Sequence record: LR745208.1
Strand: one strand, 5' to 3'
DNA length: 64,000 nt
Under the pieces are notes generated by a model. The model had not been told where the DNA came from. It saw nothing but the letters and a program-made list of their open reading frames with translations, and did no database searches. Position 1 is the stretch's first letter. Each line of letters begins with the position of its first letter. Position numbers and translations under genes: made by a program. Below are positions 42,537 through 49,936 of this stretch, piece after piece.

Positions 42537-43129
42537 CAGATCGAGGCCACCAACTTCAAGGTGGCCTGCCCATTGGCATCTACGGGGGTGCATGTCTGAG
42601 ATAGGGACACACCGGGATGCTTCCACTCCCGCTCTTGTGGCAATCCGGTCAGGATTACCTCCCGAATCTGCTTTCCTACCCGCTGTGCTCTAAATGCCTT
42701 TGGGATACTGTTGGCGGTCACCGTTAAGGTGACTTGACCACGAGTTGGGGACAGCCTATCCGTTACAACCAAAGGAGAGCTACTTGGGAACAGGTCGGAT
42801 CCAAGCTTTTCCATAGCCTTGTGAACATCCCCTGTGAGGTGTTCAACCTCCCCATGGATACGGGAGATTGTGACCCTGGCAGAGAACTTCTTGGTTGTCC
42901 TGAGGTTGGACAGGGGACTCGTAACCTGCATCCACCACGTCTGATCCTCATCCGGGTCGAAGACAAACGACTCCCCCTCCTTCAACTGCCCCGGCACCTT
43001 ACCCGTAAACGTGAAGGTAATCCCTCCCTCCCCAAGGTCCATCTGAACCTCGCAAAACGCCCCCAGCCTAGGGAACTTGACTGTGACCAACTTGGGCCCC
43101 GGACCATCCATATTGACAAAACCACCCAT
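42533..43129 (-). CDS. Hypothetical protein (198 aa)
   Basis: GGAGG SD; convergent 4-nt overlap with 41838..42536. Confidence 0.55.
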   Translation of the reverse strand: MGGFVNMDGPGPKLVTVKFPRLGAFCEVQMDLGEGGITFTFTGKVPGQLKEGESFVFDPDEDQTWWMQVTSPLSNLRTTKKFSARVTISRIHGEVEHLTGDVHKAMEKLGSDLFPSSSPLVVTDRLSPTRGQVTLTVTANSIPKAFRAQRVGKQIREVILTGLPQEREWKHPGVSLSQTCTPVDANGQATLKLVASIC

Positions 43130-43141
43130 TGAGTCCTCCTT

Positions 43142-44575
43142 CTATACTGACTGCATCACGTCTATCAGAAACCGTCGAATCCTCTCGGCTACCTCTTGGG
43201 GGCGCTTATTCACATCTCGCTCCCAAAGGATCAAGCACCGCATTCCACAATCCTTGTAGAAGGCGACCACATCATCATGGTGTGCCTCTCGGGACTTCCC
43301 AGTCTTCTCAGGGCCGTGCCACCAGTCACCAAACGCCTCAATGACCGCTGGGATGCGAAACAACTTGATGTCTGCCCCATTACGATGAGCTTCCATCTGC
43401 CCCCCCGTCAGGACGATGAAGTCCGGGTACCTGTCCTTAGGAGTCCCCGGACGCCTAACAGGATACACCCGGCTAGGACGTGATCGGTCCCCTGTGAAGA
43501 GAACCCCAGGAGGAGACAACTCCTGTACCCGTTGTTCCAACCCATTTGGAGACTCATGCTTCTGATTGCGCCACAGGAACTGAGGGGGATAGGGCACCCC
43601 ATACTTGCCATTCCATACCTCCTTGATCTTGAACCACACAGCTTCTACCTTCGAGGGGTTATCAGTCCCGTACTTCTCCAACCACGTCTCTCGGGCTTTG
43701 GCCAAGACATCAGGGCACTTCTGGGAATGCTGGCCATTGTGGTTGGCTAGGTTGGTCTCGTAGGCTCGCTTCTGTACTTCTGGCAAAAGCAATGGGGTAC
43801 GGACCCCAAAAACCTTCAAATTGCTGGTCTCCCAGACCAATTTGCCTCCAGGAGACATCATGGGGTGCCGGACACCCCAGTTCTTCATTGAGGTATCCTT
43901 GAACTGCACCTTGAAGGTGTCCGTTAGAAGATAGTGACCGACCCCATACTTCTCTTGATTGGTCTGTATCCTCTTCGCCATTACCTCTGGGGCCTGATTG
44001 GGATTCTCAACCCCAAACCGTTCGAGATTGGAGACACGGATCCGCCTCTGAATCTCCTCAGACCCAAATGGGTTCTCGGCCCCATACCTCTCCAAATTGG
44101 TAGCAGATGCCCTGGCCTTGATCTCTGGAGACTGAAGGCCCCAACCACCATATTTGATAAGCATTGTCTCCTTGGACTGAGCCTTCACATCCCCCGCCTG
44201 GAACACATTGTCCACTCCATACCTGTCCTGAACAGTGGCCACCCTCCGCTGAAGTGTCGCCCCAATTCTCACAGAGGCTTCAGGGAACTTGGCCCGGTAG
44301 GTTTCTTCGGTCATACCATGGACCTTCTTCAGGTGGTCCATCATCCGCTTGAACCGCATATCCCTACCCGTAAGGAAACACTCCTGGCATCGAACCCAAT
44401 CTGTTCCTTCCACCAACCCGTCAGCGTATGGGCCCCGCTTGAAGTAGGCCTCCCAATTGAACTCTGCGTAAGGAATACCGATCTCTGTGTTCCAGGAAAG
44501 GCAGGCTAAAGCATGGCTAGGGAGTCCCTTGTGGGACATTGACTTCTTACAGGCAGGGCAGAGGACATCACTCAT
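43142..44575 (-). CDS. Free-standing homing-endonuclease-like protein: Zn fingers, ~10 T(N)xE(R/K)YGxxNP repeats, C-terminal Vsr/PD-(D/E)xK nuclease
   Basis: CPAC and CQEC..HLKKVH Zn fingers; ~23-aa repeats (TNLERYGAENPFG, SNLERFGVENPNQ, TWLEKYGTDNPSK...); YPDFIVL...VIEAFGDWWHG...CLILWERD. Confidence 0.8.
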   Translation of the reverse strand: MSDVLCPACKKSMSHKGLPSHALACLSWNTEIGIPYAEFNWEAYFKRGPYADGLVEGTDWVRCQECFLTGRDMRFKRMMDHLKKVHGMTEETYRAKFPEASVRIGATLQRRVATVQDRYGVDNVFQAGDVKAQSKETMLIKYGGWGLQSPEIKARASATNLERYGAENPFGSEEIQRRIRVSNLERFGVENPNQAPEVMAKRIQTNQEKYGVGHYLLTDTFKVQFKDTSMKNWGVRHPMMSPGGKLVWETSNLKVFGVRTPLLLPEVQKRAYETNLANHNGQHSQKCPDVLAKARETWLEKYGTDNPSKVEAVWFKIKEVWNGKYGVPYPPQFLWRNQKHESPNGLEQRVQELSPPGVLFTGDRSRPSRVYPVRRPGTPKDRYPDFIVLTGGQMEAHRNGADIKLFRIPAVIEAFGDWWHGPEKTGKSREAHHDDVVAFYKDCGMRCLILWERDVNKRPQEVAERIRRFLIDVMQSV

Positions 44576-44581
44576 GCCCTC

Positions 44582-44609
44582 ACTATACCCACTCGGAGGG
44601 TCTTGTCAA
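44582..44609 (-). promoter_or_regulatory. sigma70-type promoter giving a probably leaderless mRNA for the 477-aa endonuclease
   Basis: TTGACA (44609-44604), N16, TATAGT (44587-44582), then 6 nt to ATG 44575; no SD. Confidence 0.6.
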
Positions 44610-44612
44610 CTC

Positions 44613-44637
44613 GGAATTGTCGGTGGCTGACAATTCC
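44613..44637. terminator. Hairpin downstream of the C-extein gene
   Basis: GGAATTGTC-ggtggct-GACAATTCC, a perfect 9-bp stem. Confidence 0.55.
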
Positions 44638-44703
44638 TATCCTGTACTTTGGGTGTGGGGTTCGGGGTTTCTTACTATTTCATAACTATGCGAAACTAAT
44701 GGA

Positions 44704-45597
44704 TTAAAGGAAATTCCGAGGTGAAAGCACACCCCTACCCACCGAACTTCCAAATGCCGATTTTATCCCTATCCCATACTTAGGCTGTGAAATTCCTCTC
44801 AAGAACTTAACTGTCCTAGCCTTAGCCTCCGCCGCCTTATCAAACTGGGATTCCGCGTTCTGCTTGAGGGACTCATACTTGGAGGATCGCTCAATGGACA
44901 ACGAAATGCCGCCAATTGAGTAGTCGAACTCTTCATGGACCATCATAGCCGCAAGGGCAAAGCAGGCGTGGGAGATGGCCTCCCAGAGGATGGCGGTCCG
45001 CCACGCTGGCTTTTCCATGACGAGCTTATCAATGGTGTCGAGCCCCTCAGTCATGGGAGGCATCATATTAAACCAGTCCAATCCCCGCTCAAGGTAACAA
45101 AATAGCTCATCCTCTCGCCATATCTGGCCAAAGACCCGATTGTAAGCCCCAATGTTCCCCTCAGCCTCTGGAGGAGCGAAGTGATAATCGCGATCAGGGC
45201 AGTTGTGACCCGTTATTGAGGACTTGGACAGCACAAGGTTGTGGTTGCCCTCAACCGTGATGTCATACATGACATCCCTAGGTGGGAGTGGATGGAGCCC
45301 CCTGACTCGACTGTAGGCAATCTGACCTCCAACAACGGCCAATACATAAGCACCTGCTTGAAGGTCCTTCGCCTCAACAGCCTCTGTTGGTGAGGTATAG
45401 ATCCGATGTCCGCCAGTAACCACAGATGCCCCATAATCCGTTACCAATTCCCAAACCGTCTCAGCCCCAATCTGTGCTTGGTGCACTCTTTCAACCTGAC
45501 GCCACTCTACTTCCCCACCAGGAGAGACAGAACGGACTCGGAGGGTTCCGGCTCGATAGGAGGCTTGGAGTTTTTCTTTTTGCGTCTCAGTAAGCAT
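44704..45597 (-). CDS. C-terminal half of fractured head-tail adaptor-like gene: C-intein (132 aa) + C-extein (165 aa)
   Basis: GAGGAG SD + ATG; intein blocks B (VVTGGHRIY), F (MYDITVEGNHNLVL) and G (GHN/C); C-extein CPDRDYHFAPP...FDYSIGGISLSIERSSKYESL. Confidence 0.85.
   Translation of the reverse strand: MLTETQKEKLQASYRAGTLRVRSVSPGGEVEWRQVERVHQAQIGAETVWELVTDYGASVVTGGHRIYTSPTEAVEAKDLQAGAYVLAVVGGQIAYSRVRGLHPLPPRDVMYDITVEGNHNLVLSKSSITGHNCPDRDYHFAPPEAEGNIGAYNRVFGQIWREDELFCYLERGLDWFNMMPPMTEGLDTIDKLVMEKPAWRTAILWEAISHACFALAAMMVHEEFDYSIGGISLSIERSSKYESLKQNAESQFDKAAEAKARTVKFLRGISQPKYGIGIKSAFGSSVGRGVLSPRNFL
45202..45597 (-). other. C-intein (long half) of an atypically split intein
   Basis: 132 aa ending His-Asn (45207-45202), followed by Cys+1 (45201-45199). 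Confidence 0.85.
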
Positions 45598-46550
45598 TCC
45601 TTCAGCTCCTCTTCGGTCCAGATGGCAAACCCCCAGCCGCGGGCGGAAGCTTCCATCTCTGCTACCCTAAGGCGTTCGATAGCCTCATCATTCTCTGGGC
45701 GTGACTTGAGTACATAGGCTGGCTTCACCTCCACCAACACAATCCTACCATCTGAGTAGGTGACCAGGAAATCTGGAAGGATCCATTTCCCGACCCATTT
45801 CTCCAGGGTTATTGACGAAAGGTACAGCACCTTCTCATATTCATAACCAAGCACCCTAGGGTCCCCCTCCAAATGATCTATGGCAGCTACCTCATAGGAG
45901 CTTCTCACGTACCCACGGGGCTCAACCCCTTTGGGTGTATCCATCCACTGCCCTTTGCCATGACTGTTGTGGTCAGGATGCTCTTTCATCCAGAGGGTCT
46001 TTTGCTTCGACAGGAGGGCACGATGTTCGGGAGCATTCATGGCCTCAAGAGTCTTGGCCCTGAATGCTGGGTCTTTCCAATTGGCCTTCTGCCTCTCTGA
46101 CATCATGGCAAGAACCTCAGGAGTGAAGGATTCTCTCTGTTTGGCAATATCCTCAGGGGTGCGAACCCTTCCCTTATGGAAATCGAAAAACCCATCCTCC
46201 CATAGTTTTTTGAGCTTAACAGAGGCCGTGGGGTACTTCCTGCCCTTTCCTGCCCGGCCATTTTTTGCTGAGTTATCAAGTCTATTCTGCCTAGAAGCTG
46301 GGTTCCACATTGCTCGGGTATATTTCTGAATCGCAGATAACCCTGTAATCTCCCGCATCTTTTTCCAAGGAGTTCCCGCCGCATGAAGTTCCGTGATAAT
46401 TAGGGATCGGACCTCCAGGATAAGGTCTCTCCGGTCTGCTGGAAGATGGTTTCTCTTCACAAATTCTTCATTGGTTACCCCATGTTTCTCCAACATGGGG
46501 ACTAGAAGTGGATGTGGGACTGTAACAACAGGCTTAGGTGATTTGCGCAT
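45507..46550 (-). CDS. Free-standing TnsA-like PD-(D/E)xK endonuclease between the split-intein halves
   Basis: RSSYEVAAIDHLEGDPRVLGYEYE...ILPDFLVTYSDGRIVLVEVKP...GWGFAIWTEEEL; NUMOD3-like segments; own ATG; overlaps the C-intein start by 91 nt in another frame. Confidence 0.8.
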   Translation of the reverse strand: MRKSPKPVVTVPHPLLVPMLEKHGVTNEEFVKRNHLPADRRDLILEVRSLIITELHAAGTPWKKMREITGLSAIQKYTRAMWNPASRQNRLDNSAKNGRAGKGRKYPTASVKLKKLWEDGFFDFHKGRVRTPEDIAKQRESFTPEVLAMMSERQKANWKDPAFRAKTLEAMNAPEHRALLSKQKTLWMKEHPDHNSHGKGQWMDTPKGVEPRGYVRSSYEVAAIDHLEGDPRVLGYEYEKVLYLSSITLEKWVGKWILPDFLVTYSDGRIVLVEVKPAYVLKSRPENDEAIERLRVAEMEASARGWGFAIWTEEELKECLLRRKKKNSKPPIEPEPSESVLSLLVGK

Positions 46551-46580
46551 ACCTAAGCACGTCTATAGAAGGAATAGCTC

Positions 46581-47078
46581 TTACCCGGGATTGACTTCGA
46601 GGGTTTCCCAAAGGTCATCCAATCTGACTATCATCCGTTCCCCCTCTACATCCAGCTCAACCGTTTCTTCCCCCCCAAGGCACTGGTCCCTGAGGAGCAT
46701 CCTCAACTTGTCGATCATGCCTTGGACGTTGGTCGAGTAGGCACCTGGAACGATGATGGTACTGTCGACGACAACGGCCCATTCCTGGACTACCTGTTGG
46801 GCAGGGGAGCTTGAGAACTGTTGGAAGGTCCAACGGATCCTGTAGTCGCCCGGGGTGGCAGAGCCGGGCACCTGGAGGGAAGCGAAATATTCCCCAACGT
46901 TGGGATGAGCAGGAATCCTAGTTGGGGACCCAATCAGAACCTCTGTGGGTCCTGGAGCCACGAAAAAAATGGCATAGGTGATGGAAAAAGCATCGGAAGG
47001 ATTGCCCGATGCGTTTGTCAAAAATATGTCCAGACCCCCTTGGGTTAGAAGATCATTGGGATGCCAGACTACAGCCAT
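46581..47078 (-). CDS. N-terminal half of fractured gene: N-extein (132 aa) + short N-intein (33 aa)
   Basis: ...KLRMLLRDQ|CLGGEETVELDVEGERMIVRLDDLWETLEVNPG-stop; block A begins with Cys1. Confidence 0.85.
   Translation of the reverse strand: MAVVWHPNDLLTQGGLDIFLTNASGNPSDAFSITYAIFFVAPGPTEVLIGSPTRIPAHPNVGEYFASLQVPGSATPGDYRIRWTFQQFSSSPAQQVVQEWAVVVDSTIIVPGAYSTNVQGMIDKLRMLLRDQCLGGEETVELDVEGERMIVRLDDLWETLEVNPG
46584..46682 (-). other. N-intein (33 aa) of an atypically split intein
   Basis: C1-L-G-G-E-E-T-V block A, then the RLDDLW helix, then TAA at 46581-46583. Confidence 0.8.
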
Positions 47079-48193
47079 TGTCGGTTCCTCCGTGAAATGA
47101 GAAGCACTTGAAAAGGAAGGTCAGGAAAATCAATTCGGAATTGCTTGATCTTGTCATAGGAAGGGTGATGGGGGGCAAACCATCCTTTTGTATCCTCAAT
47201 TCTCACCAGATGCCGAGAAATAAAAGTTCGGATATCTTTCAAGGTTGGCCACTCCCCCAGCTGTTGTTGTGCCTCGCTTAGGGAGACATCTGTCACCCAG
47301 AAGTCTGGCAGGTAAGATCTCCCGTCTGACAGTGGGTAGACCATAGCCTCATAAAACCATGCTTTTCCTTCCCGGCTCAACTCTCCTGCCCTCATTGCCT
47401 CGGTGGCACTCCTCATTGTCAGCATGCCTTGAAATGGTGTGCCCGCACGAGTCTTAGCCCCATACCCAATACCCTTAGGCACCACCCTCTTTTCCGTACT
47501 ATAGTCAGAGAGGGCAGTTCTGGACCGCTTGATCCCTGCCCATAGGGCTTGATCTACCCCGAACAACTGACAGAGGAGGGCGAGCTTAACTTCTGTGATA
47601 CTGAACAGCCGGATAATCTCATCTGTGGCTTTGAGGCCGATAGTGTGGGCTGTCAAAGCCCCAATAATCTCCTCCCTAGAGAACCTCCGTTGTGCAAGCT
47701 GTGAGAACTCTCTAGGATCCCCCAGAACCCCATTCAAAATGGCCCCCCAGCGTTGTGGGTCAACACTTCCCCATCGCTCTAACGGGGTGGTGCCTGCACG
47801 AATCAGGTCCTGTTCTTCCTCCACAGCAATCCTAACCAGATGAGAAGCCCCCCTGATATCTCCAATCTCCTTGCTCAACGCCCCCCTAGACATGTCAATA
47901 TGCTGTCGCACCTGTAGTCTGGTCAGACCAGATGCCCCCATTATTTCCCCAAGGCCCATACCGGCCACCACAAAACCACGAACAACCTTCGATATGTTGG
48001 GGTCCAAAGGCTCCTTTCTGGCCGTTCTAGTCCTGCCCATTCTTGAGGCAGTGGTCAGAATGGTACCCTTAGATTTACCCGTTAAAGCCATAATTTCCGC
48101 TACACTACAGGTACCCTCAGCATAACTATCAAGAAGTTGTAGCCCCTCTTGTGTCCAAGGTGAATGAGTCCCAGTGGTTAGGCTAACAGGCAT
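47069..48193 (-). CDS. Free-standing PD-(D/E)xK endonuclease-like protein with N-terminal HTH-like repeats (374 aa)
   Basis: WFYEA..Y.LSDGRSYLPDFWV...IEDTKGW C-terminal nuclease pattern; overlaps the start of the N-extein gene. Confidence 0.7.
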   Translation of the reverse strand: MPVSLTTGTHSPWTQEGLQLLDSYAEGTCSVAEIMALTGKSKGTILTTASRMGRTRTARKEPLDPNISKVVRGFVVAGMGLGEIMGASGLTRLQVRQHIDMSRGALSKEIGDIRGASHLVRIAVEEEQDLIRAGTTPLERWGSVDPQRWGAILNGVLGDPREFSQLAQRRFSREEIIGALTAHTIGLKATDEIIRLFSITEVKLALLCQLFGVDQALWAGIKRSRTALSDYSTEKRVVPKGIGYGAKTRAGTPFQGMLTMRSATEAMRAGELSREGKAWFYEAMVYPLSDGRSYLPDFWVTDVSLSEAQQQLGEWPTLKDIRTFISRHLVRIEDTKGWFAPHHPSYDKIKQFRIDFPDLPFQVLLISRRNRQWL

Positions 48194-48239
48194 CGTATCC
48201 TGGTAGGGCTATAACCCAAGTAGAGGCGAGTGGCGTGGG

Positions 48240-48467
48240 TCACCGTACTAGGAGCAGTTCCAATGCCTGTTCACGGAACAGTTGCTCGGTCTGCACGTAC
48301 GTCTCCGTCCAGGGCCACCGTGGCAGGTCAACGACCGTTTCTAGGGGCACGTCGAACCTCACTGCAACTCCATGCTCAGTGTGCCGGTCCACGACGCCTG
48401 TGGCGCCGAGGAACTTGCCATGTTCGACCACTTTCACGGGGTCTCCGCCGAAGAACTTGGGCTCCAT
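48240..48467 (-). CDS. Small KOW/SH3-like protein (75 aa)
   Basis: FFGGDPVKVVEHGKFLGATGVV; TGATG overlap with the upstream gene. Confidence 0.5.
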   Translation of the reverse strand: MEPKFFGGDPVKVVEHGKFLGATGVVDRHTEHGVAVRFDVPLETVVDLPRWPWTETYVQTEQLFREQALELLLVR

Positions 48468-49936
48468 CAGAACAACTCCTCCCATTCGGACCCGACTACC
48501 ATGTCAACATTTGCGGCACTCTGTATGGTGACCGTGATTTGCTCTCCCGGGTTCAGCACATGTGAGCCATGTTTTTCATGTCGGATCTCAATGTTGTCTA
48601 CTTTTGCCATACCACGTCCATGAAGCAAAGTACCCCCTGAAAAGGACGTGGCCGCCGTGTCATATGAAGCTGGAGATGTTGATGCGGACACATCCGTGAA
48701 AGACGCTGCAACCAGCGTAGCATTCAGGTAGACTCGCACCACTACATTCTTGGTGCCATCAGATGATGCTGCAATCCCGTGGATGTCCAAAACGATGCGG
48801 TTGAGCTTTGATGCATAGGTCGACTTATTCCGAATGGTCAGGACTGGGGTCTCAGTTGTGATGCCCGTTTTGATTGCCACAATCCCACGTGCAATACCGA
48901 AGAGGTTATTTTCACCCTCATGGAAGATCCCAAAAGAACTGACGAGGGGTCCTACAACCGTTGCATTAGTTGTATTGGCCGCCTCCATCATGAAGGGCAG
49001 GGAAGGGTTAGTGATCGAGGGTGTGGTGGCCGTCCCGGCGTATTGAATCCGGTGCACGAGCACAAACTTGCCTGTGGCAGGGTTCTCCACATAGAATGTG
49101 ATCATCCCGTAACCCAGCCATTGGAACCGGATCTGAAACACTTGCCCTTTCGTCCAGTCCAATATGGGTAGCTCCACTTTGGCATCCGCCCGGTCATCAC
49201 TCCAGGCAGATTGGGCCACGAAGTTGGTGTCATTCGCAGCAACCCCAACTACAGATGAGGCGAAGGCCCCGACAATTGTGGAACCAGCAACGGAATAGGC
49301 TCCAGGAAGAGACCCTGACCGATACGACCTGAAGATCACGGTATTGCCGACTGCTTCGGTTTGCCAGCCTCCATTGGTCCCCACCTCAGAGAAGTCGACG
49401 GCTGCGATCTCATTGGCGGTCACAGTAGAATCGGCCCCATTGGTCACGGGGCACAACTTGGCGACCCCATTCAAAGTAACCGTAACGGACTCTAGTGTAC
49501 TGGATTTGGTCGTGATTGTGAGTGTGCGTACCTCGCTCGATCCACCATAACGTCGCAGCACCCCGAAGGTAGTTCCCTGGTACCCAAATGCAAAGGCGTC
49601 ATTGACCGACCCATAGCCAACGTACTGTGTTGAGTTGGTGGCCCCTGTAACGAAGAACCCAGCGAACCTAGCCACAATCCCCTGACCGGGAACGTATTTG
49701 ACTGACTTGCGCGAGAGCAATTGAGAAAAACTGTTGTTTGCGGCTGCCGTAGAGATCACAGCCATGCTGTTGGTCTGGGCCGATGTGCCACTACCATTTT
49801 TGCGCAAAATCAAAGCATCGTTGGAGAGGTTGTACGTGAATCCCTGAGCCACGACAGGAAAGGGTTCCGTAACCAGCAACTCATTGAAGGCTGACTTCTG
49901 GTTACCCGAATCGGTCTGGGAGAAAACGGTACTCAT
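48467..49936 (-). CDS. Putative virion collar/fibre-associated beta-rich protein (489 aa)
   Basis: SRKSVKYVPGQG, FAFGYQGTTFGV and FQIRFQWLGYG..FYV segments typical of large-phage structural proteins; GGAGG SD. Confidence 0.55.
   Translation of the reverse strand: MSTVFSQTDSGNQKSAFNELLVTEPFPVVAQGFTYNLSNDALILRKNGSGTSAQTNSMAVISTAAANNSFSQLLSRKSVKYVPGQGIVARFAGFFVTGATNSTQYVGYGSVNDAFAFGYQGTTFGVLRRYGGSSEVRTLTITTKSSTLESVTVTLNGVAKLCPVTNGADSTVTANEIAAVDFSEVGTNGGWQTEAVGNTVIFRSYRSGSLPGAYSVAGSTIVGAFASSVVGVAANDTNFVAQSAWSDDRADAKVELPILDWTKGQVFQIRFQWLGYGMITFYVENPATGKFVLVHRIQYAGTATTPSITNPSLPFMMEAANTTNATVVGPLVSSFGIFHEGENNLFGIARGIVAIKTGITTETPVLTIRNKSTYASKLNRIVLDIHGIAASSDGTKNVVVRVYLNATLVAASFTDVSASTSPASYDTAATSFSGGTLLHGRGMAKVDNIEIRHEKHGSHVLNPGEQITVTIQSAANVDMVVGSEWEELF

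Follow-up and report, generated by a model that had tools for sequence, protein, structure and literature searches.

A virion-module gene of an uncultured phage divided by an atypically split intein and a TnsA-like nuclease gene

We have analysed a 64,000-nucleotide (nt) stretch of phage DNA, here called the window, which was taken from LR745208.1 (positions 310001-374000), a 485-kb genome that is recorded as 'uncultured phage' and carries no annotation. Within it, a gene for a conserved protein of the virion/tail module is divided into two halves, each with a predicted piece of an intein, and a TnsA-like nuclease gene lies between them. An initial annotation of this DNA had proposed this arrangement. 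ORF and motif checks bore out the three open reading frames (ORFs), which lie on the minus strand in the order N-half, nuclease, C-half, and the intein pieces of 33 and 132 amino acids (aa). The features of the locus are as follows.

46581-47078 (-): N-half ORF, 165 aa, made up of N-extein and N-intein and closed by a stop of its own
46683-47078 (-): N-extein, 132 aa, last residues ...LRDQ
46584-46682 (-): N-intein (block A, Cys1), 33 aa, first residues CLGGEE
45507-46550 (-): TnsA-like PD-(D/E)xK nuclease gene, free-standing, putative homing endonuclease, 347 aa
45606-45953 (-): nuclease catalytic domain, approximately residues 200-315, strands and helices with a predicted local distance difference test score (pLDDT) of 84-96 in an AlphaFold2 (AF2) model
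45606-45611 (-): ribosome-binding site of the C-half (GAGGAG), 8 nt before the ATG and within the nuclease gene
45507-45597 (-): overlap of the nuclease 3' end and the C-half 5' end, 91 nt in two frames
44704-45597 (-): C-half ORF, 297 aa, C-intein plus C-extein
45202-45597 (-): C-intein, 132 aa, with block B T61/H64, block F D112 and block G H131/N132
44707-45201 (-): C-extein, 165 aa, first residues CPDRDY, Cys+1

Layout of the split gene and its intein pieces

The N-half and the nuclease are in one frame, separated by a 30-nt spacer that holds two stops, and the C-half is in a frame different from that of the nuclease; the initial annotation had described both stops and frame change, and both are seen in the window. 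Upstream of the N-half ATG, GGAGGA is found at a distance of 7 nt, and the start of this ORF overlaps the end of another ORF (47069-48193) by 10 nt. The C-half was said to have its own GAGGAG Shine-Dalgarno (SD) sequence and ATG. These were found with a spacing of 8 nt, and the related loci L002, L004 and L037 have purine-rich equivalents. In these three loci, as in the window, the C-half ATG lies behind the purine-rich stretch, where the nuclease gene has its conserved 3' end. The overlap between nuclease and C-half is 91 nt in the window and in L037, its closest split relative, 7 nt in L002 and approximately 7 nt in most relatives. The nuclease ORFs of the window, of L037 and of a few others continue for about 30 codons past the usual stop, and this tail is predicted to be disordered (pLDDT <50). 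Synonymous divergence (dS) between the window and L037 is low in the overlap segment (0.25), as expected for dual coding.

The three-ORF layout was found again in eight distinct loci from independent metagenomes, which argues against chance. Nuclease-homologous DNA was present between the halves in all eight distinct split loci examined, and the frames of the ORFs differ among them. The earlier view that a single sequencing error does not explain the arrangement also held. Nor is the window locus a one-off, with more than 100 distinct and comparable homologous N-halves (161-177 aa) in public metagenome data.

Public gene calls at the window locus begin the C-half 37 codons late (260 aa, P0001) and the nuclease 18 codons late (329 aa, P0241), so that conserved N-termini are lost and both the overlap and the split-intein architecture are hidden. 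The C-half N-terminus, MLTE, is kept among the C-halves of relatives (M1 in at least 90%), and this conservation favours the ATG at 45597 over the 260-aa database call. The conserved N-terminus of the nuclease likewise favours the ATG at 46550 over the shorter call. Routine gene calls thus hide split-intein loci of this kind, and the more than 100 N-halves have passed unremarked in public metagenomes, as both the C-half and the nuclease are cut short by gene callers. In another locus, the nuclease frame is open (L038:4058-4954) and the gene caller gave a 129-aa ORF only.

The motifs that had been assigned to intein blocks B, F and G (TGGH, YDITVEGNHN and GHN/C) were all found in the C-half. 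TIGR01443, the NCBIfam intein C-terminal model, matches the C-half with 25.1 bits (cutoff, 15.6). When a profile of 19 C-halves was searched against the PDB, solved inteins came first (KlbA, 2e-9; Pho RadA, 2e-6; CDC21, 9e-5), followed by the PolII, TFIIB, DnaX and NrdJ-1 inteins, and 11 inteins or bacterial intein-like (BIL) domains rank ahead of any other protein. The C-intein alone, searched as a single sequence, gave weak intein matches in the PDB (E=0.13). Residues T61, H64, D112 and N132 are invariant in the 19 C-halves, the C-intein parts of which are otherwise approximately 40-65% identical. The +1 residue is Cys or Ser in 22 of 22 intein-bearing alleles and mostly Asn in empty alleles. 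Cys1 is present in all 101 site-a N-halves among the 120 N-half relatives listed, and the 33-aa N-intein aligns with the start of a contiguous intein in the related locus L018. Taken together, these sequence criteria support the presence of a class-1 intein (Hint splicing domain) of 33 + 132 aa in the N-half and C-half. The N-intein is much shorter than the C-intein, which constitutes an atypical split as the initial annotation had recognized, and short N-inteins are typical of the family (27-43 aa; median, 34 aa).

The intervening nuclease and the host protein

The ORF between the halves had been described as TnsA-like, and both sequence and structure comparisons agree. PF08722 (Tn7_TnsA-like_N) matches residues 230-313 with 39 bits (cutoff, 26.5). 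E220, D260 (in PDF), E274 and K276 (in EVK) are invariant in 16 relatives and make up the PD-(D/E)xK site, with the core RSSYE...PDF...EVK. The AF2 model of the nuclease (pLDDT 78.8) was compared with the PDB using Foldseek, and the top four matches were all TnsA (1t0f and 1f1z; probability, 1.00; E-values, 5e-6 to 1e-5), followed by the next non-TnsA fold at E=0.04. A sequence profile of the nuclease family gave no match in the PDB. Searching the nuclease profile against 1.84 billion representatives returned 44 proteins at E<=1e-30, 731 at <=1e-10 and 3329 at <=1e-3. These counts indicate that the catalytic domain comes from a large family and the full-length form from a small one.

We considered whether the protein could be a Tn7-type TnsA transposase subunit. 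This was rejected, as the NCBIfam TnsA-like model NF033179 gave 23.5 bits, far below its cutoff of 110, and no TnsB or TnsC partners were found near the nuclease, the neighbours of which are virion genes and homing-endonuclease-like ORFs. The PADLOC defence models gave no match for the three nuclease-like ORFs, and our literature search found no paper linking TnsA-like nucleases with inteins or homing. The nuclease domain also matches PHROG 218, labelled 'head closure' (E=3.2e-9). This label probably reflects a mis-annotated nuclease family and could mislead automated phage annotation.

The host (extein) protein is widely conserved, with approximately 950 C-extein homologues at 54-85% identity. 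At least 90 of the top 120 are uninterrupted at exactly the split point, so that the intein-less contiguous homologues anticipated by the initial annotation do exist. Empty homologues are 295-299 aa long, and in them ...LRDQ is followed mostly by Asn-Pro-Asp-Lys. The extein lengths of the window add up to 132 + 165 = 297 aa, as previously noted, which equals the modal length of the intein-less homologues; the comparison with homologues was made piece by piece. The N-extein aligns with residues 1-132 of the uninterrupted homologues, which measure about 297 aa. By extein identity, the closest relatives have no intein (85, 82 and 79-80%), and the closest split one, L037, stands at approximately 77%.

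The initial annotation had called this protein a neck protein or head-tail adaptor, and that label fared less well. It has behind it a weak match to PHROG 17327, 'head-tail connector' (E=0.0067-0.08), and a single annotated homologue, a protein of Tunturiibacter phage Tunturi_5 that is labelled connector (29% identity). A profile of the host-protein family gave no match in the PDB. The AF2 model of an intein-less homologue, P0002, has an N-terminal beta-sandwich of high pLDDT and a helical C-terminal part (overall pLDDT, 65.6). A Foldseek search of the PDB with this model returned no neck protein (best E, 2.5e-3; template modelling score, <=0.26), and its best matches in BFVD are all uncharacterised phage proteins, phage G gp165 among them. 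The phage G paper offered no usable lead on function. The neighbourhood is a virion/tail module that encodes a virion structural protein, a tail protein, Laminin_G_3 fibre-like proteins and a 1685-aa glucosaminidase-bearing protein, and the host protein is best called a conserved protein of this module. Our literature search found no paper describing inteins in this huge-phage host protein.

Two further features of the host family were observed. Nine homologues (P0011, P0012, P0022, P0027, P0055, P0059, P0075, P0101 and P0114) have, beyond the conserved ...SPRNFL, an additional C-terminal tail that is hydrophobic and about 20-25 aa long; they include both intein-bearing and intein-less proteins, and the host protein of the window is without the tail. 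The beta-sandwich domain of the N-extein has weak matches (24-28% identity) at L027:3293-3574, L028:2566-2859 and L029:4347-4625, which lie 1-3 kb upstream of the host gene. This suggests a paralogous N-extein-like domain in a neighbouring virion gene of these three loci.

Related loci and the proposed origin of the split

The related loci preserve several states of the same gene. Of the 31 related IMG/VR loci compared, 21 have no intein at either of the two sites found in this family, three carry a contiguous intein, one (L027) shows the split form of the window, five have an interruption at the second site and one is cut by the contig end. The contiguous in-frame intein is approximately 165 aa long and occurs in two distinct contigs and three loci (L018/L033 and L026), with ORFs of 462 and 474 aa. 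The window halves align to residues 1-162 and 170-462 of the L018 protein. They cover the whole L018 intein, which indicates that no part of the intein core is missing and that the break lies in a short linker. In locus L004, the nuclease gene (L004:3715-4620) has one in-frame stop, and both intein halves are intact.

A second intein site is found in the host protein of relatives, after ...DEF, and its intein is paralogous to that of the first site. The phage of the window is without it. Both sites lie in highly conserved motifs of the host protein and in low-confidence regions of the monomer model. The second-site intein is contiguous in L037 (L037:1772-3208) and P0065, and split in L031, L032 and L034-L036 (L031:5599-7934, L034:5599-8002 and L036:4612-7020). 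The split order is an N-intein of 31-36 aa that begins with Ser1, a DUF559/Vsr-like nuclease ORF of 314-335 aa, and a C-intein that ends ...HN and is followed by Ser or Thr. Thus, the same break position of about 33 residues occurs in paralogous inteins with two unrelated nuclease families. The second-site split inteins are candidates for cysteine-independent short-N split inteins.

Selection was estimated against L037, the closest relative, since synonymous sites are saturated in comparisons with the distant split relatives. The ratio of nonsynonymous to synonymous rates (dN/dS) was 0.16 for the N-extein, 0.37 for the N-intein (32 codons), 0.095 for the nuclease, 0.21 for the C-intein and 0.085 for the C-extein, values that are rough because synonymous sites are near saturation even in this comparison (dS 1.1-2.2). 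Approximate as they are, they place both exteins, both intein pieces and the nuclease under purifying selection.

Based on the layout of the locus, its homology and conservation, the evolutionary intermediates and the signs of purifying selection, we propose that this is a fractured gene, in which a nuclease-broken, atypically split intein would rejoin the host protein by trans-splicing. We give this reading a probability of roughly 85%. A virion/tail-module protein of about 297 aa would have acquired a mini-intein of about 165 aa directly after ...LRDQ, and a free-standing TnsA-like nuclease gene would then have entered the intein coding sequence about 33 codons in, at the loop between block A and block B rather than at the canonical endonuclease site. 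The upstream half would receive its stop from the nuclease cassette, and the downstream half its ribosome-binding site and ATG from the cassette's 3' end, so that three proteins (N-half, nuclease and C-half) would be made. A complete class-1 Hint fold is predicted to form when the N-intein of 33 aa docks on the C-intein of 132 aa, and trans-splicing by Cys1, T61/H64, D112, N132 and Cys+1 would yield the mature host protein. From the sequence we infer this trans-splicing as well as the activity and the target of the nuclease. By analogy with other fractured genes, we also infer that the nuclease acts as a homing endonuclease, cutting cassette-less alleles in co-infection so that the cassette is copied into them. 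The patchy distribution of the cassette across the extein family and the purifying selection on the nuclease bear on this role.

Several observations weigh against the fractured-gene reading, in addition to the near saturation of synonymous sites mentioned above. The initial annotation had looked to intein profiles for support of both halves. The C-half matches TIGR01443, and the 33-aa N-intein piece alone matches no library model. The identity of the N-intein comes from family conservation and from contiguous homologues, and in one of these, the L026 protein, the TIGR01445 match begins exactly at the Cys, yet has an E-value of only 0.032. The single-sequence Pfam match of the C-intein is below threshold (19.6 vs 35.8 bits). 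Finally, the read-on tail of about 30 codons in the window nuclease is unusual.

Alternative explanations were weighed against the same evidence. The insert could be a group I or other intron that contains the nuclease ORF, with RNA splicing restoring a contiguous intein gene. Such nuclease genes do occur within phage group I introns (Dassa et al. 2009, PMC2677866), and the shared frame of N-half and nuclease in the window would agree with this. However, an Rfam scan of positions 43000-49000 with E-values up to 1 gave no match to an intron or any other family, and the nuclease ORF fills the insert, with the 30-nt spacer upstream and an overlap downstream, which leaves no space for a ribozyme core. 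In addition, the C-half has its own conserved ATG and SD sequence, and the frame relations among the three ORFs vary between relatives. We consider an intron highly improbable. The same shared frame and the short distance of 30 nt could also point to read-through or programmed frameshifting, which would produce one large intein with an embedded nuclease domain. However, the ORF frames (N-half/nuclease/C-half) change from locus to locus (2/1/3, 2/1/2, 2/3/1, 2/3/2, 3/2/3, 3/2/1 and 3/1/3), two stops rather than one must be passed, and in L037 the nuclease frame differs from that of its N-half. These locus-to-locus differences exclude read-through or frameshift fusions in our judgement, and we rate this the least probable of the explanations considered.

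The possibility that the pieces are remains of a decaying gene, left by nuclease insertion or by stops and a frameshift in a once-large intein and never rejoined, is suggested by the two stops and the frame change that separate them, and by the visible decay of the nuclease genes of some relatives. We regard it as very unlikely, if slightly less so than an intron. Purifying selection acts on both exteins and both intein pieces, the split form has been kept in more than 100 diverged lineages with its catalytic residues invariant, about 950 relatives share the conserved host protein, and conservation extends to the signals at which the halves start and stop. Alternatively, the intein pieces could serve as non-covalent association domains only, giving a two-subunit protein that does not splice, as proposed for Aeh1 NrdA. 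A precedent is a fragmented phage enzyme assembled via mobile-element-derived domains (PMC3045599), and atypical splits can splice slowly (reviewed in PMC11766414). The residues needed only for splicing chemistry are nevertheless invariant (Cys1, block B Thr/His, block F Asp, the terminal Asn and the +1 Cys/Ser), which makes association without splicing unlikely, although it is the least improbable of these alternatives.

The fractured-gene reading may be extended, more tentatively, to the family as a whole. The TnsA-like nucleases described here could represent an unrecognised homing-endonuclease family aimed at intein DNA at a non-canonical loop. The host family would then keep every gene-breaking stage at two sites, where nucleases of two unrelated families would have broken the paralogous inteins at one shared position of about 33 residues. 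The stages meant are the empty site, the contiguous mini-intein, the split with a live nuclease and the split with a decaying nuclease. We consider this extended proposal somewhat more doubtful than probable. If it is true, the origin of atypical split sites could be read directly from sequence, and the family would hold more than 100 natural short-N split inteins, Ser1/Ser+1 ones included.

Relation to known systems and neighbouring genes

Fractured genes with split inteins and a free-standing endonuclease (gp41-1, NrdJ-1, IMPDH-1 and others) were described by Dassa et al. 2009 (PMC2677866), who proposed that the invading element supplies stop and start signals and reported that the nuclease 3' end overlaps the start of the downstream half by 6-69 bp in 15 loci. 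The window locus resembles these genes in its N-half/nuclease/C-half order on one strand, its 3' overlap and its phage/metagenome origin, and the gene-breaking model fits it. It differs in its longer overlap (91 nt vs 6-69 bp) and in its nuclease, which is a TnsA-like PD-(D/E)xK enzyme by homology, whereas theirs are GIY-YIG or Vsr-like. Their hosts are DNA-metabolism enzymes and a terminase, in contrast to the virion-module protein of the window. In addition, the usual split gives an N-intein of about 100 aa and a C-intein of about 35-40 aa (PMC10189870), whereas the break in the window lies about 33 residues into the intein. Among large-genome phages, a fractured gene with a putative split intein is also known from jumbo phage MIJ3, in which an HNH endonuclease gene separates the halves of PolB, a replication enzyme; the split there is of the canonical kind, with blocks A, N2, B and N4 all in the N-part (PMC6892783).

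Natural atypical splits include AceL-TerL (25/104 aa), GOS-TerL (37/115 aa) and PolB16 OarG (15/168 aa), as well as VidaL (PMC10189870, PMC11766414). The window intein (33/132 aa) and its relatives (N-inteins of 27-43 aa) share with them the short N-piece and long C-piece. By published description, AceL-TerL is also a class-1 intein with Cys1 and Cys+1 (PMC11766414, PMC10189870). All four differ from the window intein in host protein and insertion site, and none of the AceL-TerL/GOS-TerL, VidaL and PolB16 inteins is among the named PDB matches of the 19-C-half profile. As for the nuclease, it shares with Tn7 TnsA (1f1z and 1t0f) the catalytic-domain fold, at approximately 20% identity over 132-160 columns, and the E...D...xK pattern. 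In contrast to Tn7 TnsA, its N-terminal region (about 190 aa, helical) is of another kind, its coding sequence lies within an intein gene, and it is without TnsB/TnsC or a transposon context.

Short-N natural split inteins and fractured genes with GIY-YIG, Vsr-like or HNH nucleases are therefore established kinds. What is new is the combination of a TnsA-like nuclease in this role, a virion-module host and a preserved series of evolutionary states. With this locus, the known range of fractured genes comes to include a virion-module host protein and a nuclease of the TnsA-like type. A within-family series from empty through contiguous to nuclease-split alleles is rare and supports the gene-breaking model of Dassa et al., and it indicates that an atypical split can become fixed when a nuclease inserts away from the canonical position. 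Natural short-N split inteins are valued for protein semi-synthesis, as the N-piece can be made chemically. Few have been characterised (AceL-TerL, GOS-TerL, VidaL and PolB16 OarG), and this family adds more than 100 natural variants with N-pieces of 27-43 aa and Cys1 with Cys or Ser at +1, along with a Ser1/Ser+1 sister family at the second site.

Three further features flank the split gene.

47069-48193 (-): 374-aa ORF with a weak N-terminal helix-turn-helix match
44582-44609 (-): promoter-like site, the only 11/12 sigma-70-like match of the region, just upstream of the 43142-44575 ORF
43142-44575 (-): homing-endonuclease-like gene (DUF7487/Vsr-like, free-standing), 477 aa, immediately downstream of the split gene

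The 374-aa ORF has no homologue in the other 42 fetched loci and looks like a lineage-specific insertion beside the split gene. Its 'PDF...E.K'-like string raised the possibility of a paralogous nuclease, which was rejected as there was no BLASTP similarity and no family match. The 477-aa protein matches Pfam DUF7487 (3.4e-33) and a PHROG labelled 'homing endonuclease' (1.8e-26), and it carries DUF7487 repeats, a ROS/MucR-like zinc-finger match and a Vsr-like C-terminal motif. Its homologues adjoin the host gene downstream in 13 related loci, with or without inteins.

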